Translations under genes and position numbers: made by a program
The notes under the pieces: model-generated
Seen by the model: only the letters and a program-made list of their open reading frames with translations
Databases searched by the model: none
What the model was told of the DNA's origin: nothing
In this document: one piece after another, positions 446 through 57,720 of the stretch
Numbering within the stretch: position 1 is the stretch's first letter
How the letters are laid out: each line of letters begins with the position of its first letter
Assembly: GCA_977017575.1 (NCBI GenBank)
Contig: CDRNVI010000148.1
Coordinates: forward strand, 1 to 64,000
Length of the DNA stretch: 64,000 nt
Source: Paramoeba atlantica
Lineage: Eukaryota > Protista > Discosea
Direction: 5' to 3'

Positions 446-3118
446 TTACTTGTGAATTTGCCAGACCATCACAGATCCATTCTGCAAAACTACTCCCAAC
501 AGATTTGAAGCTGCAGAAACACTCTTTTGCGAAAAGAGAAACGAAAGTAAGAAATCAAGAAACAAGAGAGGAGAAAGAAAAAAAGAAAAAAAAACCTTTA
601 CTTTCCCTCCTTTGAGTTGCAAGATTTGAAATCGATTTTTCCTTCCAATACCACAACTAAACCAAAATGCGTCTCCTGTAAAAAGAGATCCTTTCCTTCA
701 AACACACGAAGGGGAAAATAAAGAGTGGGAATATACCTGTTTGTGTAGCTAAGATTGTAATATTTCCATAGTTAATTGCTTCTCTTTGGTTTGATGCAGC
801 AAGGTGAACCACATTAACTCCCCCTTTTATTGAAGGAAAAATTAATAACAAAGAAAAAACTCGAAAGAAATTCTGAAAGAGGAAGCCCAACCTGATTCTC
901 GGTGAGGATCTTTTCTTCCTGCACCAAAAGATAGCACTGTGTGATTCCTAAAATATTTGTCACAAACAAAATTTTTAGGAGATGAAAGAGATAAAAATTA
1001 CTACCTTGTGGCAACAACGGTGTGTATATGACCAGCAACCACGCATGTACAACAAACGTTCATCAAAGAAGCCACAATTCGAGGTGAGTGAACAGTCTAA
1101 GTAAGAAATTTTTGAAAGAAATTTCTCAAAAATATGGAAAATGATGAGAGAGAATCAAACTTCAATTAGACCATGGCCGCATTGGCCTTGTTCAGAGGAA
1201 CCCCAAGTATAACAAACTCCATCTTTTGTCACACAAACAGCGTGAGACCCTCCAAGAGATATCTGAAAAAGAAGAGTTAAGAAAATATTTTTCAACCTGA
1301 AAAAAAGATTCAATACCTGGTGGACTCTTTTCATATTCAAAGATTTTAACAATTTTGGGACAGGAACAAAACATTTCTTGTCTTTACGATCTTTTTTTTC
1401 TTTCTCATCCAGGTCTCGAGTTTTTTTCATCTGAAACCCCAACTGAAAACAAGAAAAATGAAGAATCAAAAAAAAGTCATAAATATTTTGTTAAAAAGTT
1501 CAAAAAACTTGGCTCGATGAATTATCCCCCCAAATATAGACTCGTCCACTTTTTGTCACAACAGCTGTATTGTTGAGAGAAGTCGAAACGGTCTAAAGGA
1601 AAGATAATTAAGAAAGAGAAAAAAAGGGAGTGAGTCAATAAAAAAACCTTTGCTTTTTCATTTAATTGAACAGACCCAGGAAGATGAAAATCTTCAAAAT
1701 TGAATTTCAGTTAAGATCAAAAAAAAAAAGGAGAGAATGAATGAAGAACCAGAACAATCACCACGTCCAAGTCTTCCAAAATCTCCTCTCCCCCATGTTA
1801 ACACATCCCCAGAAAAGGACACAGCAGCTTTTGAGAATGAGAATGAGCGAATCTCCAGAAAGAAAGAGAAAAAGAGAAAAAGAAAAAAAAAACCAGAGTG
1901 ATATTGGGATGAAGAAATCCAAACAATATCGCATCCCTTCAACACTCTCACCTATCATCAAAAATTAATCCTTTTCTCTTTGACCAGTTTGACAAAAATA
2001 TCATTTACCTTTTTTGGAAATTTAATAGTGTCAGGAATATCATGCCCAAGTTGAAATTCCGCTCCACCTCCCCACCCAAACACAACACTTCCTTTGAGTT
2101 CATATTTTCTGAAAAGAGTGATTCAGTAAGAAAAAGGGAGAAAGTTACAAATTTGAGAAAAGATACATGTCCTGTGATTGTCCGTAAACACTGCACGGGT
2201 GAGAATGTGACCCACTTGACTCTAATAAAAGGTCAATCTCTTTTTCATTGACAAAAGTAAAACTGAATCACATGGAGAAAGAATTTTTCAAAAACCTTGT
2301 GGAGAAGAAAAGCTTTCTTCTTGAATCATCATATCCCCATTGGAGACTTCCTCTTCAGCAATCTGAAGAGGATTGGGGAAAATTAAAAAGAGAAAAATAA
2401 GAGAAAAATAAGAGAAAAAAAGGGAAATCAAAAAGAGAAAATGACAAGAGACCAAACTATCATCTTCATGTTTGTTTCGATGCAATAACAAATTCACTTG
2501 AACTCCTGATGGATAAATGGAAAAGAGGAAAAAACCACAAATGAATCACCAAATCTAAAATTTTAAAAAGAAAGGAAAAAAGTTTGAACCAATGGCGTCA
2601 AGAAGAATATCCACAGGGTTCCATTGATGAAGATCAGGAACGAGAAGATGTCGATAATCATTGTAAAGACGAAGAAATAATGGGATATGACCTCCAGATG
2701 CTGCCCAATGAAGACAATTCCATCTCCTTCCGTCATCTACCAGATCAACAAGACAACCTGTGACATGTCACACAAGAGGAAAAAAAGAATGGATGATGAG
2801 TCGAACACAAAAAAGAGGATTTGGAACAACTGATGAATTGAAGAGACCTTTTTGAGAGAGGAGAAGTTCGACAATTTCAAGATGCCCCCCAGCTGCAGCA
2901 CAATGCAAGGGAGTGATCCCAGCCATGTCTTTTTCCCTTCCATCAGTCCTCCCAACAATCGCTTCCTGCAACTCAAACTCATCTTCTTCTTTTTTGGCTC
3001 GATTATCTCTTTTCTTTTTCCATTTAATGTTGACAGAGATTCCAGAGAGCAAAGCATTCTCAACTTGTTCTACATCACCAACCCAGGCAACTCTCCAAAT
3101 CCAAAGAAGTCCTTCCAT
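446..3118 (-). CDS. Multi-exon protein with N-terminal ankyrin repeats and C-terminal RCC1-like repeats
   Basis: Ankyrin motifs ITPLHCAAAGGHLEIVELLL (~2850-2910) and WNCLHWAASGGH (~2690-2720). RCC1 motifs GDVLTWGRGDFGRLGRG (~1760-1810), ISLGGSHAVCVTKDGVCYTWGSSEQGQCGHG (~1170-1260) and CVVAGHIHTVVAT (~1010-1050). The 3' end is approximate. Confidence 0.72.
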
Positions 3119-3341
3119 CTTTCTTCACTAGAAAGAGAAAACGAATTGTTACGCCATGATCTCCCTTCTTCCGTTGAAGGTTTCGTCAAAAAAGAGAAAA
3201 AAATCAAAAAAAAAAATAGATCACTAAATTTTAGAGTTAGAATTAGGTTTCTATATTTTTGGAACTCTCAAAAACTCTTTTTTGTTTTTTTTTGGTGTTT
3301 GGTTCGCTTCATTGTTTTTTGGGGCAAGTTTTTGGAGCAAG

Positions 3342-6300
3342 ATGGATCCTCCTTTCTCTCCACGAACACCATCTTCTACTCCAAATGTCTCCCCTTTGGT
3401 GAACCGAACGCTCTCTCCAACTCTCTCTCCTGTTGGTCCAACAACCGCAACAACCAGACCGCTTTCCCCAACAGACTTTGTGATGATTCCTTCTTCTCCT
3501 TCCTTTTCTCCTCCACCTGAACCCGCTCCCCACCCCGATTCTTCTCCGACCAGTCAATACTCTCGAATCTCTCATGCAACATTCCCTCCTTCTCCACATT
3601 TGTCTCCTTCTCAATTATCAACAACAACCCCTCTCACAGTCCCCTCCTCTTCATCCTCTTCAAAAATTCGGAGAAGAACCAAAAAGCCTCGTTCTCTTTC
3701 TCGTTCTCGTTCTCGTTCTCATTCCCGTTCTCCTTCTCCTTCTCCTTCTCCTTCTCCTTCCTCTTCTTCCTCTTCATACTCTCTTTGGTTCCAAGTGGGT
3801 CTCTTGGTCATCATGACAACCATTTTAACCCATTTTTTCTCTTCTTTTTACGGATTTGTGGGGATGTGTATCTTAGTGGTCCTCTTAAGAGCAAAAAGGC
3901 CTTCTCTTTCTACTCCTTCTTCCTCTTCTGGTTCTTCATCTTCAATCTCTTCTTCAATCTCTTCTCCAATTTCTTCTCCATCTTTATCTTCTACTCGATC
4001 TGAAAATGAGTATGAACTCCGTGAACTTCCAAGTGATTTATCTCTTGAGTTAGAAATTGGGAGTTTGAAAGAGGGAGAAGAAAGAGCAGAGAGTTTTCGG
4101 GAATTAGATTCTGGAAAGAAGGATAATAAACAAGTTGAAGAAGGTGAAGAACAAAAAGACAGAGATCCTGTGAAAAGGATATCCAAAGAACATCATTTGA
4201 AACGGAATTCAAAAGATCGATACTCCACCCCACCCACTGGAGCCCACTTTTCTTCTTCTTCTCTTATCGAACCGCCTCTTCGAAAAACGACCTCACTTTT
4301 CTCATCTTCTTCAACTTCTCCATCACTTAGAAAATTCTTTTCACCACAAAAAGAAAGACGTGAGGAGCAACTCCTTCGAAATCAGCCTGCTTTTCCAACA
4401 ACAGAATCAGAACAACTTCAACGTGTTGAAGAAATGAACAAATGCCTCGAATTATATGAAGTCGAGAAAAAGAGAAAGGGAGAATCCTACAACGTCAACA
4501 AACACTTAATTCATTGTTGTGTTGTCAATGATGCTGTCATGGCGCAATTCCTCATTGAACAAGCTGGTGCAAATCCTCTCTATCATCTTACAGATCGTGA
4601 TGTGGGGATTGGAGACGAGAAAAGCAAAATTTTTTCCGCAGGAGAGACTCCTCTTGATGTTGCAACACGATTCGAATGTCAAGATGTTCTTGTAATTTTA
4701 AACGAGAAAAAAAAGAGAGGAAAGCAATGGATATTTCCTTCCATTCCTTCTTTTATGTCTCCTCTTCGAATTATGGTTGGAGATGTAAGGAGACAACAAC
4801 AGAATGGAAGTGATAGTATTATGACTCGAAGTACTGGCGATAGTACAGCAGGAAGTGGACCAACATCTCCTTCTTCAAGTGATGAAAAAAGTACCTTTTT
4901 TTCTCCTCCTACTTCTCCTTTTATTGATTCGAAAAAAGGTCGACCAACTTCAGTTCGAGTTCAAACTTTTAATCAGCCAAAAGACTCTCCTCTTCTCCGT
5001 GTCCCAAGAACACCATTATCTTCTTCTTCTTCTTCTTCTTCTTCTTCTTCTTCAGGACCGCCAAAATATGCTGTAACAAAAGCTGTTCGCCCCGCTCCTC
5101 CTCCTGAAGTTGATTCTCTTGTTGATGGTTTGAGAGAAGGTCCAAGTCGCGAAGAGTCAAGAAGAGAGTTTGCAACTATATTCTCTGCAATTGATTCTCC
5201 AAGGTTTGTTGATTTTGTGAGTGTGTGTGTTGTGGTGATTTAATTTTATTTGGTTTTTGAGAGTTTTTATGATTTGTAGGAGAGAGAGAATGTTGTTGGG
5301 AGACTGGAGAAGCAACAAAAATCAATTTTCGAAAGAAACTCGAACTCGTGCCACTGCAACAAAGTTTGTAACCATTTTACTCAGAATATCTTATTTGATT
5401 GTTTTTTTTTGATTTTTGTTGTGTTTTCTTCTCTATCTTTCTTCCTCCAGATATTACATCATGGAATATTATTGGAATTTGATCACTTATCTTGGGAAGA
5501 GAAAAGAGAGAAGAACCCGTCTTGATGAGTTTTTAAAAGAGAGTACGTCTTTTATTAAAAGAAGAGAGAAAATAATACAAAATTGGGGATCCGAATGTAA
5601 AAAATTTAACTTTTGTGACAGGGAAATACCCCAAACAAGATGCAAAGAGGATTCTTCAGGATCATTATTTTATGGAATCAAAATTTTTGAGAGTAAAAAG
5701 AACACAAATGAGAATCGAACATTTTCAGGCACTGCCTCTCTCTCTCATTCTACTCTTTCCTTTTCATTTTTTCTCTTTCTTTCTCTTTTTTATTTTCTCT
5801 TTTTGTCTTTTCTCATACAAAATCAATCCAGATTCTTTCCCTGATTGGAACTGGAGGATTTGGACAAATTTTTCTCTGTCGCAAAAGAGACACAGGAGAG
5901 ATTTTGGCGGTTAAAAAAATGTCTCAAAAAATATTGAAATTGAGAAATAAGGCTGTTCATGTGAAGAATGAGAGAGATGTTTTGGCGAAAGGGTATGATT
6001 CTCCATGGTTGGTCCATTTACTTTATTCTTTTCAAGGTTTGTTGGTATTCTTTTTTCGATTTTCCTTCTTTGTTTTTTTTCAAGTTTCCAAAAAGTTGAA
6101 ATCAAATTATTGATTTTCCGTTTCTCTTTTCTCTTTTCTCCGTCTCAAAGATGAATCCTCTCTTTATCTTGCAATGGAGTATGTCCCAGGAGGCGATCTC
6201 AGAGCTCTCTTAGACGCAATCGGAGTTCTCGCATCTGATTGTGTTAAATTTTACTCAACTCAAATGATTATGTGTATTCGCTCGTTACATTATTTGGGGT

Positions 6301-7750
6301 ATATCCACAGAGATTTGAAGCCTTCTAATTTTTTGATAGACAAAAAAGGGTAATAACTGATATCTTTTTTTATTATTATTTCATCTCTCTTTCATTTTTT
6401 TTTTAACTCGTTTTTTTTTTTTGGAAGATTTTTGAAGTTGGCTGATTTTGGGTTGTCGAAATATGGTCGTTTTGATCCGAAAAAAATTCAACGAAGGATG
6501 AGTGAACAAAAGGAAGCAGAAGAGAGAGGCCAAGGAGAAAAGAAAAAAGAGAAAGAGAGTGAGAAAAAGAAGGAACAGAAAACAGAACAGGAGAAAAAAG
6601 ATGGAGAAAGGAGGGAAGATGAGCAAACGAAAGAGAAAAAAGAATTGCAAGATGAAGAAAAAAAAGAAAGCAAAGAAGATAAAGAAAAAGAAGAAAAAGA
6701 AGAAAAAGAAGAAAAAGAAGAAAAAGAAATCAAAGAAGAACAAAAAGAAGAACAAAAAGAAGAACAAAAAGAAGAGAAAAAAGAAAAAGAAAAAGAAAAA
6801 GAAAAAGAAGAAGAAGAAGAAGAGGAAGAAGAAGAAAAAAAAGAAACCAAAAAAAAAGAAACCAAAAAAAAAGAAAAAAAAGAAAAAGAAGAAAAAGAAG
6901 CGCTCCAAATCGTAGGATCACCAAATTACATAGCAGTAGAAGTTCTGAGAAGAGAAAAATGCAATTATGAAGCGGATTGGTGGTCTTTTGGTGTCATTTT
7001 GTATGAAATGTTGGCTGGTGATCTCCCCTTTGATGGTCCTGAACCGATGGCTATTTTTATGAATATTTTGAATTACAAGTTTGTTTTTTGTTTTTTTTTG
7101 ATTTTTGATTTATTTTTTATTTTATTTTATATTTGGAGGAAAATTTTGTTCTTTCTTTTTTTCTCTTTCTTCTTTCCTCTCTACACACTCAAGAAATACT
7201 TTAAAAATCTCATTTTCTCACAAACAGAAAACATGTTGTCTACCCGGAATGGGATTCTTCCGATCCAATCGCCTCAGAAGCGTGGAAACTCGCACAAGGC
7301 CTTCTAACAGAACCAAATGAAAGAATTGGGAAAAATGGTCTTCAAGATTTTAAGAAACACCCTCTCTTTTCTGATGTTGAGTGGAAAAATTTGCGATCTT
7401 CTGAAGCCAATCCACCACCATTTGTTCCGGAGTTGGATCATGATGCTGATACAACTTATTTTGAGGATGTTGAAACGTTTCATGTTCCTCTTCCTGGTTC
7501 TGATGGGCCTGAAGATATTGTTGTGGAGAGTGAAGGGCCTGATTTGTCTTTTGCGATTCAACCGAGAAGGTTTGTGGGGTTTACTTTCAAGAGGATTGTG
7601 AGAAAGGGGAAGGATGAAGAATCAAATGTTGATATTTCGATGAATGTTCGGTTTGATGAACATGATGGGGGGATTGATCATAAGATGGTGGAACAAGATG
7701 GATTGAGATTACCAATTGATGGAGAGAAAAAGGTTGATGATATTGATTGA
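3342..7750 (+). CDS. NDR/LATS/Dbf2-family AGC Ser/Thr kinase with a long N-terminal extension (hydrophobic segment, ankyrin-like pair)
   Basis: Spliced exons give the NTR YYIMEYYWNLITYLGKRKERR..FLRVKRTQMRIEHFQ, then ILSLIGTGGFGQ, AVKKM, ERDVLA, LAMEYVPGGDL, HRDLKPSNFL, LADFGLSK, GSPNYIAVEVL, DWWSFGVILYEML, PPFVPELDHDADTTYFED and the hydrophobic motif RRFVGFTFK. Confidence 0.92.
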
Positions 7751-22987: not shown

Positions 22988-23003
22988 CACGGGGTTCTAA
23001 CTC
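22988..23003 (+). repeat. Left terminal inverted repeat (16 bp)
   Basis: CACGGGGTTCTAACTC, exact reverse complement of 30934-30949. Confidence 0.85.
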
Positions 23004-23160
23004 AAGCCAAATGAAAAAGACCAAGAGTTTCTTTGACATCCAATTCAGGAATGTGATTTTGACGTTTGGATTATCATAGGATTCTTTCAATCTCAGTGAA
23101 ATATTGGGATTCATTTGAGCGAAGGTCACGAAAAAGAACGAACTTTCGTTGGTGTGGCAT

Positions 23161-23230
23161 TGGGCAAAACTGGGCGAAACTGGGCGAAACTGGGCGAAAC
23201 TGGGCGAAACTGGGCGAAACTGGGCGAATC
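23161..23230 (+). repeat. Subterminal 10-bp tandem repeat (TGGGCGAAAC) x7
   Basis: Five perfect units flanked by one variant unit at each end (TGGGCAAAAC, TGGGCGAATC). Confidence 0.95.
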
Positions 23231-23728
23231 TGCTGTGGGTTTGCGAAAGGGTTGGCACCATACAACAAGTGAGAGATAGGAAAATTGGTTTGTGGTCAAG
23301 ATTTTGGAGATTCTGTGGTGATTCATTTGTTCTTGAAAGTTTGGTCTGCTTGTGCTGTTGTGATCAGAAATTCCTTGAGAGTTTCTGTTCCCTGCAAATC
23401 TTTGAGAAGGAACAAATATCGTGAACAAATAATTAAAATTACTTGCAAAAATTCCAATTTTCAGCATCTACAAACTCTTGACTACTCTCCACCAGACCAA
23501 AAGATCTCATCAACACTCAGAGTGTGGTTCCACCCTGAAACAACCCCCACCCTCTCCCCTCTTTCATTGTCCTCCAAACACTGGTGGAGTTCTGCAGTGA
23601 AAACACACTTGAAATTGGATCTTCTGTAGTTTTTGGTTTCCCTTTCTTTTTTTTCTTAAAATTAGTGCCACTATTCTCAGTTGACTGAACTTCCCTCTCC
23701 TTTTTCACAGCGTTTCCAAGAGAGAAAA

Positions 23729-26700
23729 ATGGATTTAATCCCTGATGGACTCCCAAAGAAACGTGAGTTTCTTGTTGTTTACCAATACCTTGCGCTGACC
23801 CTTTACCATCATTTTGACAAGTTGAGTGAGGATGAGAAGGAGTATGATGCGATCTCATTTAATGAGATTGTCGCGAAATGTTCTCAATGTTGCCCAGAGA
23901 TTCGATCAATTGAGAGCGCAAAATTTTCCACTTATATCCCACCATTGATATCTAAACTCTTTGATGTCAAAAGGGTGAGGAACTGGAAAAAATACCCTCT
24001 GAAACATTCCACTGGAATCAAACCAAGATTGGATCCCTTTATCCAATCATTTTGTCATCATCTTCTAAAAAGAACTTGGAAGCAAACAACTTTGTTTGAA
24101 GTTGGGTTGCCACCACCCAGAAGGTAAGTGGTGTTCTTTTCTTTTTTAGTGTTCACTGAGAGTGTTTTTTGAGAAAAAAAAGTGTATTTGAGGGGAAAAA
24201 TGAAATATTTTTCTTACCCCCATTTTTCTTTTTTAGAAGAAGGAAGAAACATCAGAAGGTGGGGCTTGCCCATGACAGGAGTGAGTTGAGTCCTGAACCA
24301 ATGATGATTACAAAGGAGGAGGAGAAGCCATTATTCTTTTCCCCCTTTTTTGAGTTTATTGATGATCATCACCATGATTTGTGCCCTGGAATCTCTGATA
24401 CTGCAACAGTTGTTCAGAATGCACAAAGAATTGCAGATTCTGATGGAGTTGTGAAGCGGAAATATATAGCGGAGAAATCGAAGTCTGGGTCCAGAGTAAT
24501 TGGAGTTCTTCAAGCTGGAAAACTTTTTTTTTCATTTTGTGAACGGGTTCTCTTTTTTTATCTATTTCTTTTTATTGATAAAATATTTATTGATGAGGGA
24601 TGATTTGTGTGATGATGATGATGGAATGGGGATAGTGTGTGTGGTGGATAGGAAAAGAAATATTTACATTTTTTTTCTTTTGATTCTGTGAAGGTTCGTC
24701 AAGAAGGTAGTTCTTCAGCTGCAGGTCGCTTTTGTCCCTCATGTCACCAAGCAATCCAATACTTGAAAAAGTGGAATGCAAATCAAGAATATTTAATGGT
24801 ATGTGTTTGTCTTTTTTTTTTGAGATCTTTTTAAAAAAATATCATCCTGTATGATAAAAAAGTAAAGATTTTTTAACTGACTTTATTTTGCTTGTGTTCC
24901 AATAGAAGAACCAAGAACAGCCTCCAGCCTCTTGTCATCCTCTCTCTCTTCTTGTACATCAAGTCATTGAACAGTATGGTGATGAATGGGTGAACTCCTT
25001 CAATGGGAAATTTATTCAAACCCAACTTGAGGTGCTTTTGAACAATACTCCAAATGGAAATCGATGGGACCAAGAGATTTTAAATTTCTTTGCAACACTT
25101 CAGTTTTATGGGGGTAAGCGAGTGATTAATCTTTTGCGTGGTAAAGGATGCGAGGGAAAAAAAGGGGATTTTCATTATGATCTTAAAACAACAAACCTCT
25201 GTATTCCAGCTGATTCAACTCTCCGTCGACTCATTCCTCCTGTTGAGCCTTATCAATGGTTTGATGATAAAGGTGCTCAAGTTACCCAACGGATTCAGAT
25301 CCTTGTTCAAATGCTCAAAAAACAACGAATCGATGGTCATGATCTTCAAGGAGGTGGGCTCATTTGTGATGAAATGGAGATCAGATCTGGTCTTGTATAT
25401 TTACGTACATCAGGACGGTTTGTGGGTCTTGTTGACAAATATTTAAAAGATTGCGAATTGGATCCAAATCTATTGGTTGACTATACACCAGAACTTGCAA
25501 AAAAGGTTTTTTTTGTTTTGTTTTCCAAATAATTGTTTTCATAAATCCTTAAAAATATACACAAACAAAAAACTAAAACTAAAACACTAGTTGTTGTTGT
25601 TTGTGTGTTTCTCTCTTTTTCTTTTTCTTTTGTTTTAAAACAAAAGTATTAATAGGTGTGTCAAATTTTTTTTATTTCGAATTGTGGTACCATTGCATTC
25701 CCAGTTACATTTATTCCAACAATATCGCTGACAGGGACCCAGCTGTTTGAAGTGTTTACAAAGATCTCAAATGAAATGAAGGAAAAGGAAATCGTTGTTA
25801 TGTGGACCAGCTCTGATGGATTTTCAGGTTCTCTTGATTATTCAACGAAAATGAAGGATGTTTTACATTTTTTTGATTATGTTCATCTGGTCAAGAATGG
25901 TCGAAATAACTTACTCAATCGACTGATTCAAATTGATGGAGAGAAATTTTTGATGAAAACCCTCTCGAACTGGTGGTCCAATTCCGTTGAATTACAACTT
26001 GCTTTGAAGTTAGATGATATATGTCCATCAGATAAGCAAAATCTTGTCCCTGTGATGAATTTGCTCCGTGCTGCCACCAAAATCAAGGAATTTGGTCAGA
26101 ACACTGCGAATGAAAGGGAAAAAAAGAAAGTCTTTGCTCTTGTCAAGTATCTTGAAATGTTGCTTTGTCTTCATGATCTTTTTTCAAACAACTCTTGGGA
26201 CATTGATTGTAAGATTGAGACAGCAACAGGATTGATAAAACGACTCGAGACCTACCAGGCCCAATCAAAAAGACAGTTTACAACCACAGAGTTCTTTAAC
26301 CAGGTATTTTATTTTCTTTCAATTGATTTATTATTTATTATTTAATTAAATGAATTACATGACACACCACACACTCTCTTTTCAACTTTTGTGGTCTAAT
26401 TGTTTTCCCAAAAATTGTTTTTGCAAAAATGTTAATTATATCTTTTTTTTTTCTTTTTCAATAGACTCTTCAGACTTTAAACAACTTAGTCACCTTTTTG
26501 AAGAAAGAAGATGTGTATTTTATGACCCATCGAAGAACATCAATGTTAGGAACCAATTTGTGTGAAAATCACTTTTCTGTGATTCGAAGCAAGGTTTTTG
26601 TTTATTTATTATTTTCTTTTCTTCTTTTTTCTCTTTTACACCTTCTTTTCTTTTATGTTCTTTTCTCCAATATTTTTTCCCCTCTTCCTCTCTTTTTGTT

Positions 26701-29631
26701 TACCTCCTCTATCCTTTGGTCATTTTTCTTTCATCTTATATCATTTTTCTTTGTGTTTTCTTTTGTTTTTTTGTCTTTTTCTACAGATCCGATACCCATC
26801 TCTTTATGAGTATGCTTTTTTAGAGTCACATGGATGGATTGAATTGATCAAAAAATTCTCCCCAAATCGGTTGTATGCCATGCCCAAACGCACTCTTGGC
26901 AAGAAATCTGCTTTGAAGTATAATGACCAAACAGGAGTTATCTTTGATTTCTCTGAGCTTTCTTCGTTGATTTCTTATACTAAGGAGAAAAGAAAAAAAT
27001 CTTCTTCTTCTCTGTTTCCATCTGCAACTCCAGAGCAAGTTGCTCTTGCTAAAATGATTGCTGATGCATACCGTTGCACCCGAAAAAGATTGACAACTCG
27101 ACAAATGACCTGCTTAGTTGTTGGAGGTGATGAATCACATCGAATTGTTCAAACGCTTCAAACATCTGATTCTTTCCCATCACAACTTTATCCATGTCCA
27201 TGGGAAGATTGCCCAAAGCAAGTTTGGATTTTTTTTTTTTTTTTCAAGAAGGAAAATTCAAGAATTTTTTTCTTTTTTTTTTTCTAATACAATAATTATT
27301 AACAGTACCGATTTCTTGGCTATTTAAATAACCATCTTGTTAAAAGACATAGTGGTGAACATCCATTTCCAACTGAAACATCAAAGAATTCAAATGTCAC
27401 TCTTACTCCTCCAAATGAACCAGACTTCTCAAGCCTCGAAGGACAAGTGGTTGAAATTGAGGACAGATCTTGTGAAAGTGTGGTTGAAATTGAGGATGCA
27501 TCTTGTGAAAGTGTGGAGGAATTTTGTAAAAGTGTAGTTGGTAAAAAGGATGATAACTGTTTTGGTGGGTTTGTTGTTTGGGATGGTGAGACAACAGGTA
27601 AAACGAAGGGAAGTAATAAGCAATCATTTGTTTCTCTTGCCCTTGTTGCTTGGAAATTTGGAGAGTCATCCAAAAAAAAACTTGAATTTCATGAAGCAAT
27701 TAATCCAGGTATTTTTTCTTCTCCTCTCTCTTCTCTCTTCTCCTTTTTTCTCTTTTTTCTTTTTAATTAGAAATACAACTCACAATACCAAAAACAATAG
27801 GGGAGGAGATTCCAATAACTTCCCAGGCTTACAACATTCACGGATTGTCACATCAGTTTCTCCGAAAAAGGGATACATTTGATCAAGTCTTTCCTCGATT
27901 TTTTCGATTTTTAAATCTTCTCCGGACAAAAGAAAAACCACTTGTGATGATGATTGCTCATAATGGTAAGGGTTGCGATGAACCAACATTGAAGAATGAC
28001 TGTCAGCGTTATGGGATTCAGGTTCCTTCATTTGTACGATTTTTTGATAGCAAGGAGTTATATTTCGAGATTGGACGAGACAAAGGCTCTTTGGATCGTT
28101 ATCCAAAATGGAGTGTCGACCATATTTGTACAACATTTTCGATTGATAGATCATTACGGGGAAAATGCCATGATGCTTTACTTGATGCACGGGTTCAACT
28201 GAAAATTGTTGAATTTCTTTATGAAAAATACAAAACCGAAAATGCGAAACTCAAAATTCACCTGGTCCAAAATGCACCAAATGAAGAATATCGCCAAGCC
28301 ACATCATCTGATGCCAGGAAACCTGACGAGAGAATTTTAAAGAGGGTACTGCCAGAATTATCCCTTTCTCAATTTTTGGTGGATTTTTATGTTGAGAAAA
28401 AAATTGTAAGAAGGGAGGGGAAAGGGAAGAAGAGGGAGAACAAGGTGAAGAAAGAAGAGAAGGAGAAGGAGAAGGAGAGAGAGAAAGGGAAGGAGGAGGA
28501 AGGAAAGAGGAAGAGGAAGAGGGAGGAAAGTAAAACAACTTGGGAAAGTGAGAGAGAAGAGGAGAAGGAAAGAGAAAGGGAAAGAGAGAGGAAAGAGAGG
28601 GAGAGAGAGAGGGAGGGAGAGAGAGAGAAAAAAAAAAGAGAGAAAATCAAGAGAGAAAAAGAGAAAAAAGTAAGAGAAAAAAAGGAAAGGCAGAGAGAGG
28701 GAGAGAAAAGGAATTTCACAACAGGGCTGCGTAAATATTCAGAACAACTGAACTTTAAAAAATCGTATTCTTTTTTGGTTGGTTTCTCATTTTTCTCTTC
28801 TCTTTTTTCTGTTATCTGCTCACCACAAATAAAATAGCCTGAAACGGAGAAGTTTTTATCCTCTGACCCACAAAAAAGAATTTTACTGTACCCTAATCTC
28901 GATAGGTCTTCTGTTGAAATTTTCCCAAAGGATCTCAATAGTTTGGTATCTAACGCTTATTTGAATGATTCACTAATTGATTTCTACTTGAAGTATTTGA
29001 TGAAAGTATTTGTTTTTTCATTTTTTTACTTTTTAAAGGGTTTTTTTTTTTAAAGGGTTTTTTTTTTTAAAGGGTTTTTTTTTTTAATTTTATTTTGTAG
29101 AACAAACAAACAACTGCCTTCTCATTTCTCTGTCTCTCTACATTCTTTCTCACCAAGTTGGAGAATTTGGAACACGATTATTCAATTCTTTCACGCTGGT
29201 TCTTGGACTATGATAAAATCGACTATTTGTTTCTTCCTTTCAACATTAAGGATTCCCATTGGTCTTTATTCGTTCTTAGTATCCCAGAACAAAAAATGTG
29301 GCACCTTGATTCAATGAGAGGGTTTTTGTCACACCGTGTCGACACTGTTATTGAAAAAATCAAGAAGCTTTTTCAGTCAAACTTTCTTCCCAAGAGATTG
29401 GGGAGATTGGAAAGATTGGAAGTGGTGAAACCCATTGTACCCCAACAGGAAAATGATGTGGATTGTGGAGTCTTTGTCATGAAATATGTTGAGGAATTTC
29501 TGTTGCATTTGAGCCAGGAGGAAAAACCAGATAGTTTTCTGACTCAATCATGGTTCACCAAAAACAAAGAACGTTCAGAAGTCTCCAATCTTATTGTTTC
29601 ACTTGCAGCTGAGAAAAATCAGAGCCAATAA
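23729..29631 (+). CDS. P-element-family DDE transposase fused to C2H2 zinc finger, DEDDh 3'-5' exonuclease and Ulp1/SENP (C48) protease; ~1,566 aa, 11 exons
   Basis: Exons 23729-24123, 24237-24546, 24694-24798, 24906-25505, 25656-26303, 26465-26593, 26787-27221, 27306-27708, 27801-28777, 28838-29005 and 29101-29631 join in frame (4,701 nt). Transposase: NGNRWDQEILNFFATLQFYGGKRV, ICDEM, SSDG, DYVHLVKNGRN, NLCENHFSVIR. Finger: CPWEDCPKQYRFLGYLNNHLVKRH. Exonuclease: WDGETTG, AHNGKGCD, HDALLDA. Protease: LNDSLIDFY, SHWSL, HLDSM, PQQENDVDCG. An extra upstream exon is possible. Confidence 0.88.
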
Positions 29632-29685
29632 AACCACAGAAACAAACACAACCCAAACCATTTTTTTCCTCTTTTTATTTTATTT

Positions 29686-30654
29686 TTATTTTTTGGAGAA
29701 AGGAGAGGTTGTTGAGGAGGAGGAGAGTTTGTTACAATAAGAAGGACAAGAGGGGGTTTGTTCCCCCACTTTCTCTCTCTTTTTCAGTGGAGGAGGTACA
29801 GGGATGGTCAGAGCTTCAATTTTCTCCCGGCAAAGAGTGTTTGGATCAACACCAAAAAGTCGTAAATAAGATCGGTGGATAATAAAAAGGCCAACCAATC
29901 TATCGGTTGCAGAAACAGACAAAACATCTTCCAAACTATCGTCATAACCTTCTTCTGTTCCATGACACAGTTGGTCAGTGTCCAAAATGAGAACATCCCC
30001 AATTTTTAAATTAAAAGCAAGATCAATACCCCCAATCTCAAGCCCACCTTGTTGGTCATCATCCAAATGGATCATAACCAAAACAGAAATAAAATCATTC
30101 CTGTCGTAATGCATAATTGATCTTCCAGCAGGACACATAAATAAGTGAAAGATTCCAAAATTTCGTTCCAGCAAGTTGTTTTCCTCTAAACAATTCCAAA
30201 TATCTGGTCGATATCTTTGAACCCTCTGAGAAAGTGTTCGCCCAAGGTTTTCAAGACAAGGTTGCAGAACTGGCTTCACTTCAGCTTCATAACGCCCCCC
30301 AATTCCAGCAGGGTGGATCGTGGAGTGACCTCGTTGCCTCCATTCACCACAAAACATAAAGGCTCTCTCCCCTCTTGTTGGGTCATTTGAATGATCCCAA
30401 TGTGTCTCACGACAGGCCAACAGAGCTTGTTGAAAATCCTTCATTTCATCGCGAGTAAATACTTCCTTGAGAAAATGGGCCCGATAACACCACTTTCCCT
30501 GTCGCTCAACTTGTAAATAAGCTGAGCTATTAACACGAAGACAATTTGGGTTGGGCTCCCATGTTGGCTTTGTATTCGTTTTTAGATATCGTACCAGTCT
30601 GAGAAGTCCTGACCTCTTCTTTCTTTTCTTTTTTTGAATGGGAGAGTCTTCCAT
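29686..30654 (-). CDS. TET/JBP-family 2-oxoglutarate/Fe(II) dioxygenase (Naegleria Tet-like); intronless, 322 aa
   Basis: HxD motif MHYDRND; GGLEIGG..IGDVLIL strand pattern; distal His in LCHG; DRLVGLFIIHR resembling the TET RISLVFYQH strand with its 2OG-binding Arg. Confidence 0.8.
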   Translation of the reverse strand: MEDSPIQKKKRKKRSGLLRLVRYLKTNTKPTWEPNPNCLRVNSSAYLQVERQGKWCYRAHFLKEVFTRDEMKDFQQALLACRETHWDHSNDPTRGERAFMFCGEWRQRGHSTIHPAGIGGRYEAEVKPVLQPCLENLGRTLSQRVQRYRPDIWNCLEENNLLERNFGIFHLFMCPAGRSIMHYDRNDFISVLVMIHLDDDQQGGLEIGGIDLAFNLKIGDVLILDTDQLCHGTEEGYDDSLEDVLSVSATDRLVGLFIIHRSYLRLFGVDPNTLCREKIEALTIPVPPPLKKREKVGEQTPSCPSYCNKLSSSSTTSPFSKK

Positions 30655-30933
30655 GGATAATAAGGAGGGGGAGGAGGAAGGAGTTGTTCACGTTCTTGGT
30701 GAAAGAGTTGTAGAGTCAGAAAAACTAAAAATGATTGCGATTTAATCGTCAAAGACTTTCTCTTTGTTTCTCTACACAGCAGCTTCCACAAGAAAAATCA
30801 CAAAACTCAAAAAAAAAAACAAAGAAAAAAGTCACGACTTCAAATTTTTTTGAAAATTAGGACATCCTCAGGACCTTTTCCTTCCAGATGTCAAGAGGAG
30901 TTTTTGGAAATTTCGAACCGTGGAGTTTTGGAG

Positions 30934-30949
30934 GAGTTAGAACCCCGTG
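30934..30949 (-). repeat. Right terminal inverted repeat (16 bp)
   Basis: GAGTTAGAACCCCGTG, exact reverse complement of 22988-23003. Confidence 0.85.
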
Positions 30950-31733
30950 AAATTTTTGGACGAGTTTTTTGTGTGTTGTTTGGCACGAGAAGAGTTTCTC
31001 TCTCTCTCTCTCCGCTCTCTTGTTCTTCTTCAAGGGTGCTTGTTTCTCGGTCTTGCTTCAAACATTGCTGGGGAGAAGGTGGTTGATATGTAGTCTTTGT
31101 ACTTTGCCAGTCTTCCAGAGTGGGCGCACAAGCAAGGGGGTGGTCGCACTTGTCTTGCCGGTTGATGCTGCTCCGAAAAGATTGAATGGGCGATCTTGGG
31201 GGGCGATTTTACTGTTGTTCAAGGTCCTTCACTCGTCTGTTCGGATGGTTCTCAACCAGAGAGGTTTTCGGGATACTTGAGAGACACTTTTTTGACAGTG
31301 TTGAATTTTTTCAGGTGCTCTCAGTCGGTCTTCTGCAAGGTCCTCTCTCTTTTCGGAACCTGGGGGTCGGTTTGGAGCTGATAGGGCGGTTACCTTCGAG
31401 CTGCTTGAGGTCATCATGCCACCAGTGTTTGTTGCCGTCAGAGATGGGGGACGAGAGGTGTGGATCCTATCTCCCCAAGCAAGATGGTTCACTGATGTCC
31501 AATCACCAGATAAGAACGAAGGATACGCCCCCTCTTCCTTGTGATTTTTTTTGAACTCATCTCTTTTGAACTAATTTTCACATCAGACGCAAAAAGCCAA
31601 AAAATTTCGGAAACATCATAAATTTTCGTGGGATATCATTGAAATTTCGATGAGTTTTCGGGAACGTCAAGACGTTGGGGTTGGAACGTTCATTTTTTTG
31701 GTTTTTGTTTTCGGAGAGGAATGAGACGTTTTC

Positions 31734-32126
31734 CTACTGTTTCACTTTCCAATTGAAAAAAATTTCGCTGACAGCCAAGTTGAACGTGATCCAAAAGAAA
31801 AAAGGTAAATCAAAATGAAAATCGATCTCTCGAGCGAACAAGAAGAGAGGAGCGTACGTTCCAACAAACGAGATGAACACAGTTATTAAAAAGAAGGAGA
31901 GAAGATGAAAATCTGAATATCCATTCAAATGAAGAACCTCTCGATTGTAATGAGGATTATCAGAAACGAGAAAATCTCCAATGACAAAACCAGTGTACAA
32001 AAACAGAAGGTGAAAGAAAGTTTTGATTGGTTCGAATCCAAAATAATAAGGAAAACAAAGACTGTAAATCCCAGAAATGATGGTTAAAAGTGTGAAAGTC
32101 CAACTAACCAACCGTCCAGCACCCAT
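31734..32126 (-). CDS. Small multi-pass membrane protein, unknown function
   Basis: 130-aa ORF MGAGRLVSWTFTLLTIISGIYSLCF.. with about four hydrophobic segments. Confidence 0.6.
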   Translation of the reverse strand: MGAGRLVSWTFTLLTIISGIYSLCFPYYFGFEPIKTFFHLLFLYTGFVIGDFLVSDNPHYNREVLHLNGYSDFHLLSFFLITVFISFVGTYAPLFLFAREIDFHFDLPFFFWITFNLAVSEIFFNWKVKQ

Positions 32127-32219: not shown

Positions 32220-33515
<1,296 letters not shown>

Positions 33516-54243: not shown

Positions 54244-56943
54244 ATGGCAGAAGAAGAAGAAAAGAGCTCAGAAAACGAGATTCTTTTTGATGCTGTTGAG
54301 GAAGGAGATAAAGAACTTGTCAAACTTCTTCAAAACAAGACTCAAAAATTGAATATCAACGTCAAAAACAAGGTTTTCAAAAACATTTGCTTTTTCTGAT
54401 CTGAGGGAGAGAGAGAGAGGGAGATGGTTGTTGTGTTGATGATTTGTTCAAAAACTTTTTTGTTTTCAGTTTGGAAAGACCGCTCTTCACATCGCTGCTT
54501 CCAAAGGTTTTGAAGAGATTGTGAAAATTCTGATTGAACATGGATCCAATGTTGATCTTCAAGATCGAGTTTTGTTTTTCTTTTGATTTGTTTTCACATG
54601 TTTGGGGAGAGATGGTTGTGTGTGTGTGATTTTTTTTTAACTTCTTTTTTGTTCAGCCTGGATGGACCGCTCTTCACAAAGCTGCTGGCATAGGTTCTGA
54701 AGAAGTTGTGAGAATTTTGATTGAACATGGATCCAATGTGAATCTTCAAGCCAAAGTTTTGTTTTTATTTTGCTTGATTCTTTATTCTTTTATTTTATTT
54801 GGCTGATGGAAGATTCTGTGATTTGAGTGAGGATCGGAGTGAGTGGAGTTTTGTACTTTTATTTTTAACTCCCTTTTGTGAAGGATGGAGCAACTGCTCT
54901 TCACGAAGCTGCTAAACGTGGTTTTGAAGAAATTGCAAAAATACTTGTTGAACATGGGTCCAACATTCATCTTCAAGATAGAGTTTTGATTTTCTTTTTC
55001 TTTTGATTTGTTGTGATGATGATCTGTATTTTGAAGATCAGTTTTATTTGGCTGATGGAAGATTGTGTAATTTGTGGGAGGGTCGTAGTGAGTGGAGTTT
55101 TGTATTTTTTTTAAACTTCTTTTTTAAGATTGGAGCAACTGCTCTTCACATAGCTGCTTCCAATGGTTTTAAAGAAATTGTGAAGATTCTTGCTGAAGAA
55201 GGATCCAACATTGATCTTCAAATCATAGTTTTGATTTTCTTTGATTTCTTTCTCTCTTTTAATTTGTATTCTCCTTTTTATTTATTGCTCTGATGTGGTG
55301 TTGGAGGGTGAGAGATGGTTGTGTTTTGTTTGTTTTTTAAACTTCTTTTTTTGAGGATGGAAATACCGCTCTTCACTTTGCTGCTTCGAAAAGCTTTGAA
55401 GAAATTGTGAAGATTCTTATTGAACACAGAGCCACCCTTGATCTTTCAAATCAAGTTTTGATTTTTCTTTTTCTTTGTTTTCATTTTTTTTCTTGTTTTT
55501 GATTATTGGTCATCTATTTTGATGGAGAGGGTGATAGTTGGTGTAATGATTTGTTTTTGGTTGTTCTTTTTTGTTAAAACTTCTTTTGTTAAGCGTGGAT
55601 GGGCTGCTCTTCACGTAGCTGCTGCGTATGGTAATAAAGAAATTGTGAAGATTCTTATTGAACACGGAGCCACCCTTGATCTTTCAAATCAAGTTTTGAT
55701 TTTTCTTTTTCTTTGTTTTCACATTTTTTTTCTTGTTTTTGATTATTGGTCATTTATTTTGGTGTGATGGAGGGGGTGATAGTTGGTGCAATGATTTGTT
55801 TTTGGTTATTCTTTTTTGTTAAAACTTCTTTTGTTAAGAGTGGAGAGACCGCTCTTCATTGGGCTTCTTCGGAGGGTAATAAAGAAATTGTGAAACTTCT
55901 TGTTGAAGACAGAGCCAATGTTGATCTTCAAGATGGAGTTTTGATTTTCTTTGTCTCATTTTTATTTGGTTGTTGATGTGGTGGGAGGATAAAAGAGACG
56001 AAGAGAGAGTGAGAGAGAGTGAGAAGGTTGTGTGATGATTTGTTTTGTTCTTTTTTAAACTTCTTTTTGTTAAGAGTGGAGGGACTGCTCTTCACACAGC
56101 TGCTGCGCGTGGTAATAAAGAAATTGTGAAACTTCTTGTTGAACACGGAGCCAATGTTAATCTTCAAGATGCCGTTTTTATTTTCTTTGTCTCATTTTTT
56201 TATTTGGTTGTTGATGTGGTGGGGGGATAAATGAGACGAAGAGGGAGAGTGAGAAGGTTGTGTGATGATATGTTTTGTTCTTTTTTAAACTTCTTTTTGT
56301 TAAGGGTGGAGGGAGTGCTCTTCACACAGCTGCTGAGGGTGGTTCGAAAGAAATTGTGAAACTTCTTGTTGAACATGGATCTAACATTGATATTCAATCC
56401 ATGGTTTTGATTTTCTTTTTCTTTTTGATTTGTTTCTCTCATTTTGATTTGTTGTTTTTTGATTGTGTGATGATTTGTTTTTGTTTTTTTCTTTTTAACC
56501 TTCTTTTTTATTTAGTCTGGAGAGACCGCTCTTCACCTAGCTGCTGAGGGTGGTTATGAAGAAATTGTGATCGTTCTCATTGAACATGGAGCTCAGATTC
56601 ATCTTCAAACCAAAGTTTTGATTTTCTTTTTTGATTTTTTTTACTGTGTCATTGTTATTTTGTTATTTTTGTTATTTTATGGGGAGGGGGTATTGGCATG
56701 ATTCTTTCTTTTTTGAACTTTCTTTTTTTTTGTTAGGGGGGTAAAACAGCGCTTGATGTTGCAAAAGATCAGAGTATTATTGAATTGATCACCCAATTGA
56801 AAGTTTGCTCTTTGTTGATCTCTTTTTCTTTTCAATTTTAATTTGAATGTGTTTCCCTTTTTTTTTTTTTTCTTTTTTTGGTTTTGCAGAGCAAAAATAT
56901 CAAACCAGCTCGAAAAAAAAGAAAACTAAACTCTGAGAGTTAA
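54244..56943 (+). CDS. Ankyrin-repeat protein: N-cap exon, ten 99-nt single-repeat exons, C-cap exon and NIKPARKKRK tail exon
   Basis: Ten exons from 54470-54568 to 56516-56614 each encode one 33-aa xGxTALHxAAxxGxxEIVKILxEHGxNxxLQxx-type repeat, bounded by AG and GTTTT(G/T). Confidence 0.9.
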
Positions 56944-57148
56944 GAGAGAACTTTCAAAACAAAGAAACACAATCATTCTGGAAAATCAGTCTCATTCCAA
57001 AAAGTTTTGATGAAAAAAATTCAGAATCCTCAAATTTCTCAAAGAATCACTATTTTATTTTGGTCTCTCTGCAACATCAGAATGAAATGAAAACAGTTTT
57101 TCAAACAAACTGCGAAGTGGAAAGAGGAGGAGTTTCTATTTGTTTGAG

Positions 57149-57720
57149 AGTGGAGAGACTGCTCTTCACAAAGCTGCTGGAGGTTGGAAAGCAATTGTGA
57201 AAATTCTTCTGGAACATGGATCCAACATTCATCTTCAAGATACAGTTTTGAGTTTCTTTTTTGGTGTGTGGTTGGAAGTAGTTGTGATGAATTTTTGTTC
57301 TTTCTTTAAACTTCTTTTTTGTTCAGCACGGAGAGACTGCCCTTCACTATGCTGCTGAGGAAGGTTGTGAAGAAATTGTAAAAATTCTTCTTGAACATGG
57401 ATCCGACATTCATCTTCAAAATCGAGTTTTGATTTTTCTTTTGGTTTTAATTGGTTGTTTTAATGTGATGAGGAGGTTGAGATGTTTGTTGTAAAAATTA
57501 TAAGAAAAATATTTTTCTTTTTAAACTTCTTTTTTGTTCAGGAGGGAGAGACTGCCTTTGCTATTGCAAAAAATAAAAGAACTTTTGAACTGATTAAAAC
57601 ATTTCCAGAAAGGGTTTGATTTTATGTTTCAATTTTCTTTTTTCCCTTTTCTTTTTCAACTTTATTTTTTTGACTCTTTAATAGAATGGAGCCAATATCA
57701 AATCAGCCAAAAGATCCTAA
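57149..57720 (+). CDS. Ankyrin exon module without a visible start exon (two repeat exons, C-cap and NIKSAKRS tail): 5'-truncated gene or alternative 3' cassette
   Basis: Exons SGETALHKAAGGWK.., HGETALHYAAEEG.., EGETAFAIAK.. and NGANIKSAKRS-stop. The frame upstream of 57149 reaches a stop without an ATG. Confidence 0.65.

Follow-up and report, generated by a model that had tools for sequence, protein, structure and literature searches.

A P-superfamily transposon of Paramoeba atlantica predicted to join its transposase to a C2H2 finger and a DEDDh exonuclease, with a probable Ulp1 extension and probable TET/JBP-type cargo

The catalytic residues of the Drosophila P element transposase are D230, D303 and E531. 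The enzyme is unusual among cut-and-paste transposases in that its staggered cuts leave 17-nt 3' extensions on both the element and the donor, the processing of which is left to the host; the third intron of the element is regulated. Here we describe a locus from Paramoeba atlantica, found in positions 1-64,000 of the forward strand of contig CDRNVI010000148.1 (assembly GCA_977017575.1), a 64,000-nucleotide stretch referred to below as the window. The large gene of this locus is predicted to encode a P-type transposase followed by a C2H2 zinc finger, a DEDDh exonuclease and, very probably, a Ulp1-type protease. We put a probability of roughly 0.75 on the locus being an autonomous, recently active P-superfamily transposon that encodes a transposase-C2H2-DEDDh protein, very probably with the Ulp1 domain included.

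The predicted protein resembles the P transposase and THAP9 (6p5a and 6pe2) in its RNase H-like core, with aligned D, D and E residues and a DxxH motif, in the large helical insertion that separates the second D from the E, and in a catalytic region that superposes on theirs (template-modelling (TM) score 0.65); as in the P element, terminal inverted repeats are present. Unlike P and THAP9 it has no THAP domain detectable with Pfam, its N-terminal 253 residues having no recognised fold, and it carries a C-terminal extension made up of the C2H2 finger, the DEDDh exonuclease and the probable Ulp1 domain. Its inverted repeats are 16 nt long as against 31 in the P element. A DEDDh exonuclease joined to one part of a DNA integrase complex is also found in Cas2-DEDDh (8fy9), which trims prespacers for the Cas1-Cas2 integrase and is matched by the profile of our exonuclease family with an expectation value (E) of 2e-7. 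That system is prokaryotic and its integrase, Cas1, is unrelated, so that the analogy is functional only.

Exonuclease and protease domains have been described in DNA transposons of other kinds. Dada transposons of Laccaria and Ectocarpus carry a DnaQ-like exonuclease (Kojima and Jurka 2013, PMC3706591), and processing of cleaved 3' ends has been proposed for the DEDDy domain inside Dada transposases (PMC3706591). The Paramoeba protein likewise combines a cut-and-paste transposase with a DnaQ-like 3'-5' exonuclease in one polypeptide, but its transposase is P-type and its exonuclease is a DEDDh domain placed C-terminally, behind the C2H2 finger, whereas the DEDDy domain of Dada lies inside the catalytic core of a transposase of another superfamily. 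Ginger1 and Mutator-like transposases end in a Ulp1 domain (Bao et al. 2010, PMC2836005), for which a role in repair signalling or transposition has been suggested (PMC2836005). In the Paramoeba protein the Ulp1/C48 domain would likewise stand C-terminal to a DNA transposase; those enzymes, however, are retroviral-integrase-like or of the Mutator-like element type, and the exonuclease is absent from them. The fungal DNA transposons that carry TET/JBP genes belong to the KDZ, Plavaka, hAT7, IS3EU and PHISTA groups, the P superfamily not being among them (PMC12730594). The Paramoeba element shares with them a separate dioxygenase-type gene beside the transposase gene and differs in its amoeba host and in its superfamily, and its dioxygenase assignment is weakly supported. 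A full-text literature search, Repbase lying outside it, produced no description of a P-type transposase that is joined to either a DEDDh exonuclease or Ulp1. The locus is a P-superfamily transposon, of a superfamily itself known, with an undescribed accessory architecture and a probable TET/JBP cargo.

The transposase, C2H2 finger and exonuclease

Eleven GT-AG exons on the plus strand (23729-29631) join in frame into 4,650 nt, which encode 1,549 residues and a stop codon, with no internal stops; all phases fit and both intron-split codons are sense. This bears out an earlier note on the same DNA, made from the sequence by a model, which described eleven exons joining without stops; the length that it gave, about 1,566 residues, differs from ours through boundary choice only. 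The intron-8 acceptor can be placed at 27770 or 27800 with the frame kept either way, and the intron-9 donor at 28406, 28445, 28670 or 28778, all in frame, which gives proteins of 1,425 to 1,549 residues. The joint between exons 9 and 10 is the only one supported neither by a split domain nor by a relative. Domains were searched exon by exon, and those that span introns were assessed through the pieces in the separate exons and through relatives without introns. For exon 4 the similarity searches used 24906-25493, and local comparisons flanked 25495-25534.

The fusion of the three core domains was evident in relatives of the protein. A full HMMER search with exon 9 identified two long proteins, P0003 (952 residues) and P0004 (849 residues), which have the exonuclease at the C-terminal end and the Pfam domain TNP-like_RNaseH_N near the N-terminus, and which are colinear with exons 4-9 at 34-42% identity. 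Single continuous open reading frames (ORFs) colinear with exons 4-9 are present in L002, L003 and L004, and in the relatives the counterparts of exons 6 and 7 join with no gap. Since these relatives have one uninterrupted ORF, the core fusion is not an artefact of exon joining. A word search with P0003 produced 25 proteins from JGI, ENA, Logan and one EukProt transcriptome (Pompholyxophrys). Their names in the databases, if any, are 'hypothetical' or 'DNA polymerase III epsilon subunit-like', labels that conceal a transposon family. In a Pfam scan of 22 relatives, 21 matched PF21787 (TNP-like_RNaseH_N), 12 matched PF00929 (RNase_T) and one matched SAP. On these alignments, the combination of transposase, C2H2 finger and DEDDh exonuclease within a single polypeptide is conserved across a clade of uncultured eukaryotic relatives. 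The earlier note had not recognised the architecture of the protein; the three-domain core proves to occur in at least a dozen uncharacterised database proteins, while the four-domain form was found nowhere else. Two distant relatives, L007 and L008, have the transposase only, with neither exonuclease nor Ulp1 nearby.

Two proteins met in these searches differ in layout. P0074 (1,392 residues) contains TNP-like, C2H2, SAP and RNase_T domains; ERI1/3'hExo is likewise arranged with SAP immediately ahead of DEDDh. P0045 (1,036 residues) has a piggyBac-type transposase (DDE_Tnp_1_7, E 3e-11) and a weak N-terminal RNase_T match (E 0.005), and could represent another case, independent of this one, in which a transposase is paired with a DEDDh exonuclease.

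In the 1,549-residue model the transposase residues are D408, D507, D527-x-x-H530 and E703. A transposase family profile that included the window exons matched the Drosophila P transposase (6p5a) with E 3.8e-7, the only PDB transposase matched by sequence, and in this alignment the FDEIEIR, SSDG, DYVH and VENFF-type motifs fall on the P transposase catalytic residues. An AlphaFold model of residues 30-640 of P0003, calculated from an alignment with the window exons, had a predicted local distance difference test (pLDDT) score of 81 and a predicted TM (pTM) score of 0.83. It superposed on 6pe2/6p5a with the TM score given above (E 2e-11, approximately 520 columns), as against 0.33 or less for ISCth4, Hermes, Transib and RAG1, and the match covers the large helical insertion separating the second D from the E, which is the GTP-binding domain in P. 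The PF21787 domain is split by intron 4 in the window, and its best match among the relatives has E 3e-13. Profile and predicted fold together assign the transposase to the P superfamily (P element/THAP9-like).

The C2H2 finger, C849-x4-C854-x12-H867-x4-H872, is interrupted by intron 7, and splicing makes it whole. It is conserved and unbroken in the relatives, and the family profile matches the YY1 fingers (E 5e-4). The exonuclease residues are D950 and E952 in Exo I, D1051 in Exo II, and H1115 and D1120 (HxxxxD) in Exo III. Exon 9 scored 31.3 bits against Pfam RNase_T (PF00929, cut-off 24) and aligned to E. coli DnaQ at Exo II and at the HxxxxD motif of Exo III. The exonuclease family profile matched PolC/DnaQ epsilon (E 2e-14 to 4e-10) and TREX2 (E 2e-5) besides Cas2-DEDDh, and ERI1 weakly (E 0.08-0.17). 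All four domain assignments of the earlier note (P-type transposase, C2H2, DEDDh exonuclease and Ulp1) are supported, and the catalytic residues that it reported as intact each align with a counterpart in solved structures (6p5a for the transposase, DnaQ/PolC for the exonuclease, and Ulp1/SENP1 for the protease).

The Ulp1 exons and the remainder of the element

Exon 11 matched Pfam Peptidase_C48 (PF02902) with E 3.7e-22 and 79.7 bits (cut-off 20.7). Its residues H1426, D1443, Q1489 and C1495 align to H514, D531, Q574 and C580 of yeast Ulp1, and also to SENP1. An ESM Atlas search with the Ulp1 exon confirmed the C48 family and gave nothing further, and a metagenome scan with the same exon found no relatives. 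Exon 10 has no usable start codon and is directly preceded by an in-frame TAG; the plus strand contains no ATG between 28392 and 28964, and the nearest upstream ATGs lie in other frames, run into stops and have no way into the Ulp1 frame. Exons 9 and 10 stay in frame with any of at least four GT donors, and the choice among them sets the length of the linker between exonuclease and protease at 0 to 124 residues. Without splicing, the exonuclease protein would finish in a translated pyrimidine tract. The purine-rich stretch that separates the exonuclease from intron 9, or belongs to that intron, is open in the exon-9 frame, the other two plus-strand frames contain stops, and it shows no indels among the copies of the element. 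From these sequence features we regard fusion of Ulp1 to the transposase-exonuclease protein as highly probable. The single-protein claim of the earlier note stands for the transposase, finger and exonuclease, through the continuous ORFs of the relatives; for the Ulp1 part it is probable only, as none of the 22 relatives has a C48 domain. A separate Ulp1 gene with its own start is unlikely, there being no start codon that reaches the Ulp1 frame. For cleavage of a polyprotein by the protease, another suggestion of the note, nothing was found in support; no SUMO-like or Gly-Gly cleavage module was recognised, a dedicated search not having been made.

Exons 1-3 are required because exon 4 itself lacks a start codon. 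Compared with the relatives they gave a best E of 0.08 among 82 sequences, a faint resemblance to the N-termini of upstream ORFs that is not significant. These ORFs, of 798-811 residues, lie approximately 100 nt upstream of the transposase-exonuclease ORF on the same strand (L002:382-2778, L003:382-2778 and L004:721-3156). They have no Pfam match and are 27% identical to one another, and may represent an exon for the N-terminal part of this same protein, or else another gene of the element.

Beyond what the earlier note reported, the gene proved to lie within a multi-copy element with terminal inverted repeats and a second gene on the opposite strand. The window as a whole is AT-rich eukaryotic DNA (G+C approximately 0.35) with short GT-AG introns. 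The 16-nt repeat CACGGGGTTCTAACTC has just two exact matches in the 64 kb, and these are the two ends of the element. Within the left end, the number of tandem GGGCGAAACT units varies between copies, L006 having two fewer than the window; these units may be transposase-binding sites. Word searches with exons 5 and 11 returned only further copies of the element, from one public ENA assembly (L001, L005 and L006). L001 is 99.5% identical to the window copy, and L006, in which both element ends are present, is 98.9-99.5% identical. L005 is a decayed fragment, 90% identical, that covers 28446-30957 only and extends from the purine-rich stretch through the Ulp1 exons and the cargo gene to the right end. 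In it exons and introns have diverged evenly, by 7-10%, which leaves it uninformative on coding constraint across the purine-rich stretch.

The copies in the window, L001 and L006 begin at the identical base (22988) within unrelated left flanks, and the right boundary of L006 is the right terminal repeat. L001 and the window have 505 bp in common past the right repeat, though their left flanks differ, and L001 lacks 376 nt, the right terminal repeat among them (window 30869-31749; L001:15024-15568). The 8 nt AAATTTTT adjoin the left end of L001 and the right end of the window copy, a pattern that fits an 8-bp duplication followed by rearrangement. Leaving the cargo ORF aside, the three near-identical copies differ by eight indel events, none of which lies in any of the 11 exons (P 1.6e-4 given how much of the sequence is exon, the introns being richer in homopolymers); of the 15 substitutions in exons, nine are synonymous (P 0.04, tested against a null of transitions only). 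The reading frames gain support from this pattern, which also suggests that coding capacity was important at the time the copies spread.

The opposite-strand ORF is probably a TET/JBP-like dioxygenase gene. Its language-model features pointed to Tet_JBP clusters at 0.95, with 28 of 30 matches, while no match was found in Pfam (E up to 10, PF12851 included) or among PDB sequences, and a single-sequence fold (pLDDT 35) was unusable. The ORF is intact in the window and carries 1- and 2-nt insertions in L001 and L006; these may be genuine or stem from errors in the assembly.

Features of the Paramoeba atlantica element, in window coordinates
Feature	Position	Strand	Basis or remark
Whole DNA transposon	22988-30949	+	7,962 bp; 16-nt inverted ends
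Left terminal inverted repeat, CACGGGGTTCTAACTC	22988-23003	+	perfect, 16 nt
Tandem 10-nt units, GGGCGAAACT, n=7	23162-23231	+	5' subterminal region only
Exon 1	23729-24123	+	exon model
Exon 2	24237-24495	+	exon model
Exon 3	24694-24798	+	exon model
Exon 4	24906-25505	+	exon model
Exon 5	25656-26303	+	exon model
Exon 6	26465-26593	+	exon model
Exon 7	26787-27221	+	exon model
Exon 8	27306-27708	+	exon model
Exon 9	27801-28777	+	exon model
Exon 10	28838-29005	+	exon model
Exon 11	29101-29631	+	exon model, including stop codon
Exons 1-3: N-terminal 253 residues, no recognised fold	23729-24798	+	phases fit
Exons 4-7: P-type RNase H-like transposase, first half of C2H2	24906-27221	+	colinear relatives, profile, fold
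Exon 8: second half of C2H2, linker, Exo I motif	27306-27708	+	sequence motifs, colinear relatives
Exon 9, first part: Exo II and Exo III of DEDDh exonuclease	27801-28405	+	Pfam RNase_T, DnaQ alignment
Purine-rich stretch: Glu/Lys/Arg-rich linker or part of intron 9	28406-28777	+	open in exon-9 frame only
Exon 10: N-terminal conserved part of Ulp1/C48	28838-29005	+	follows in-frame TAG, pyrimidine tract and AG
Exon 11: Ulp1/C48 catalytic core and stop	29101-29631	+	Pfam, Ulp1/SENP1 alignment
Cargo ORF, single exon, 322 residues, probable TET/JBP-type dioxygenase	29686-30654	-	language-model features
Right terminal inverted repeat	30934-30949	-	reverse complement of left 16 nt

Possible mechanism and alternative explanations

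We suggest that the transposase would excise the element as the P transposase does, leaving long 3' single-stranded extensions, and that the tethered exonuclease would trim 3' ends at the donor or target and so allow repair or integration, while the element's own 3' ends stayed held in the active site. Trimming of single-stranded 3' DNA ends at donor or target is the most likely activity of the exonuclease because its closest solved relatives are DNA proofreading or trimming enzymes. The Ulp1 protease could strip SUMO from chromatin or repair proteins near the element, and the separate TET/JBP-like enzyme would oxidise methylcytosine on it. The two functional ideas of the earlier note, that the exonuclease may process 3' overhangs and that the protease may remove SUMO from silencing factors, are reasonable as proposals. 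A P-type clade with a built-in proofreading-type exonuclease suggests that some elements process their own ends. In carrying a SUMO protease as well as a probable DNA demethylase, the element shows in compact natural form how a transposon can be loaded with enzymes that may affect repair and silencing, and if the probable identity of its cargo is correct it extends TET-carrying transposons, so far fungal, to an amoeba and to the P superfamily.

Several observations weigh against our reading of the locus. Ulp1 is absent from all 22 relatives scanned, at lengths of up to 1,392 residues; the domain is therefore lineage-specific and its fusion without comparative support. An open frame across the purine-rich stretch is weak evidence for coding, because such sequence seldom contains stops, and the stretch is open on the minus strand too. 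Exons 1-3 gave no Pfam match, THAP included; the window's own exon 4 scored 20.7-21.1 bits against PF21787, under the cut-off of 24.6; and no target-site duplication was seen at any single copy when matching 8-bp flanks were sought. The first of these points would be met if the Ulp1 exons belonged to a separate transcript or alternative isoform, with the transposase-exonuclease protein finishing, through intron-9 retention, at the TAG of 28835 or before it. The ORFs of L002 and L003, which stop approximately 30 residues past Exo III, would suit such an arrangement, as would L005, which retains the Ulp1 exons and not the transposase, and the weakness of the open frame as evidence. We nevertheless consider it unlikely: exon 10 stands behind an in-frame stop without a start codon, the region around it is free of ATG on the plus strand, the out-of-frame ATGs upstream hit stops or cannot be spliced in, and the unspliced product would end in a translated pyrimidine tract. 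L005 itself is a decaying truncation and not a separate module, since its exons and introns diverge evenly. An exonuclease that acts on RNA in the manner of ERI-1/3'hExo, degrading small silencing RNAs, is rather improbable. The SAP domain of P0074 and the weak profile matches to ERI1 point that way, and Ulp1 and TET-like modules could plausibly counter silencing, but the best matches (PolC/DnaQ, Cas2-DEDDh and TREX2) are all DNA enzymes, and the domain is covalently joined to a DNA transposase and a DNA-binding finger. Distinctly improbable is a fuller version in which the element would carry a three-layer counter-silencing kit (DEDDh against small silencing RNAs or the 3' ends of these, Ulp1 against SUMO on factors that build heterochromatin, and TET/JBP against cytosine methylation) together with an isoform switch through intron-9 retention. 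The TAG before the Ulp1 exons would then separate a short from a long isoform, an arrangement that recalls the regulated third intron of the P element.

The two remaining alternatives question the element itself. A domesticated host gene, or a segmental duplication, in place of a mobile element could be argued from the missing target-site duplications, from the 505 bp shared with L001 past the right repeat, and from the contigs of the relatives L002-L004, in which no terminal inverted repeats were found. Against this stand the perfect 16-nt inverted termini, three copies that start at the same base in unrelated flanks (with L006 ending at the right repeat), the 99.3-99.5% identity of the dispersed copies, and the occurrence of AAATTTTT next to the left end of L001 and the right end of the window copy; we give immobility very little credence. 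There is an equally slight chance that the transposase comes from another DxxH superfamily (Dada, Kolobok or hAT). Dada also has a DnaQ-like exonuclease and a DxxH motif (PMC3706591), and the lack of a THAP domain and the sub-threshold PF21787 score lean the same way. The P transposase is, however, the sole PDB transposase matched by sequence, and the predicted fold superposes on it far better than on Hermes, Transib or RAG1 (TM 0.65 against 0.33 or less). Dada in particular is unlikely both by fold and by the position of the exonuclease, a DEDDy domain that lies after the second D and before the DxxH in Dada and a C-terminal DEDDh domain here.

Neighbouring sequences

To the right of the element, a 228-nt unit is present in five tandem copies, 73-93% identical, at 32227-33438; these units underlie a 410-residue minus-strand ORF at 32220-33452. 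The right flank of the decayed copy (L005:13000-14000) is 70-83% identical to units of an ankyrin-repeat region at 54400-57500 of the window, and on this similarity it belongs to a dispersed gene family. On the metagenome contig L008, a Ty3/Gypsy-type polyprotein with protease, reverse transcriptase, RNase H and integrase (3023-7168, minus strand) lies tail to tail with the distant P-type transposase relative.

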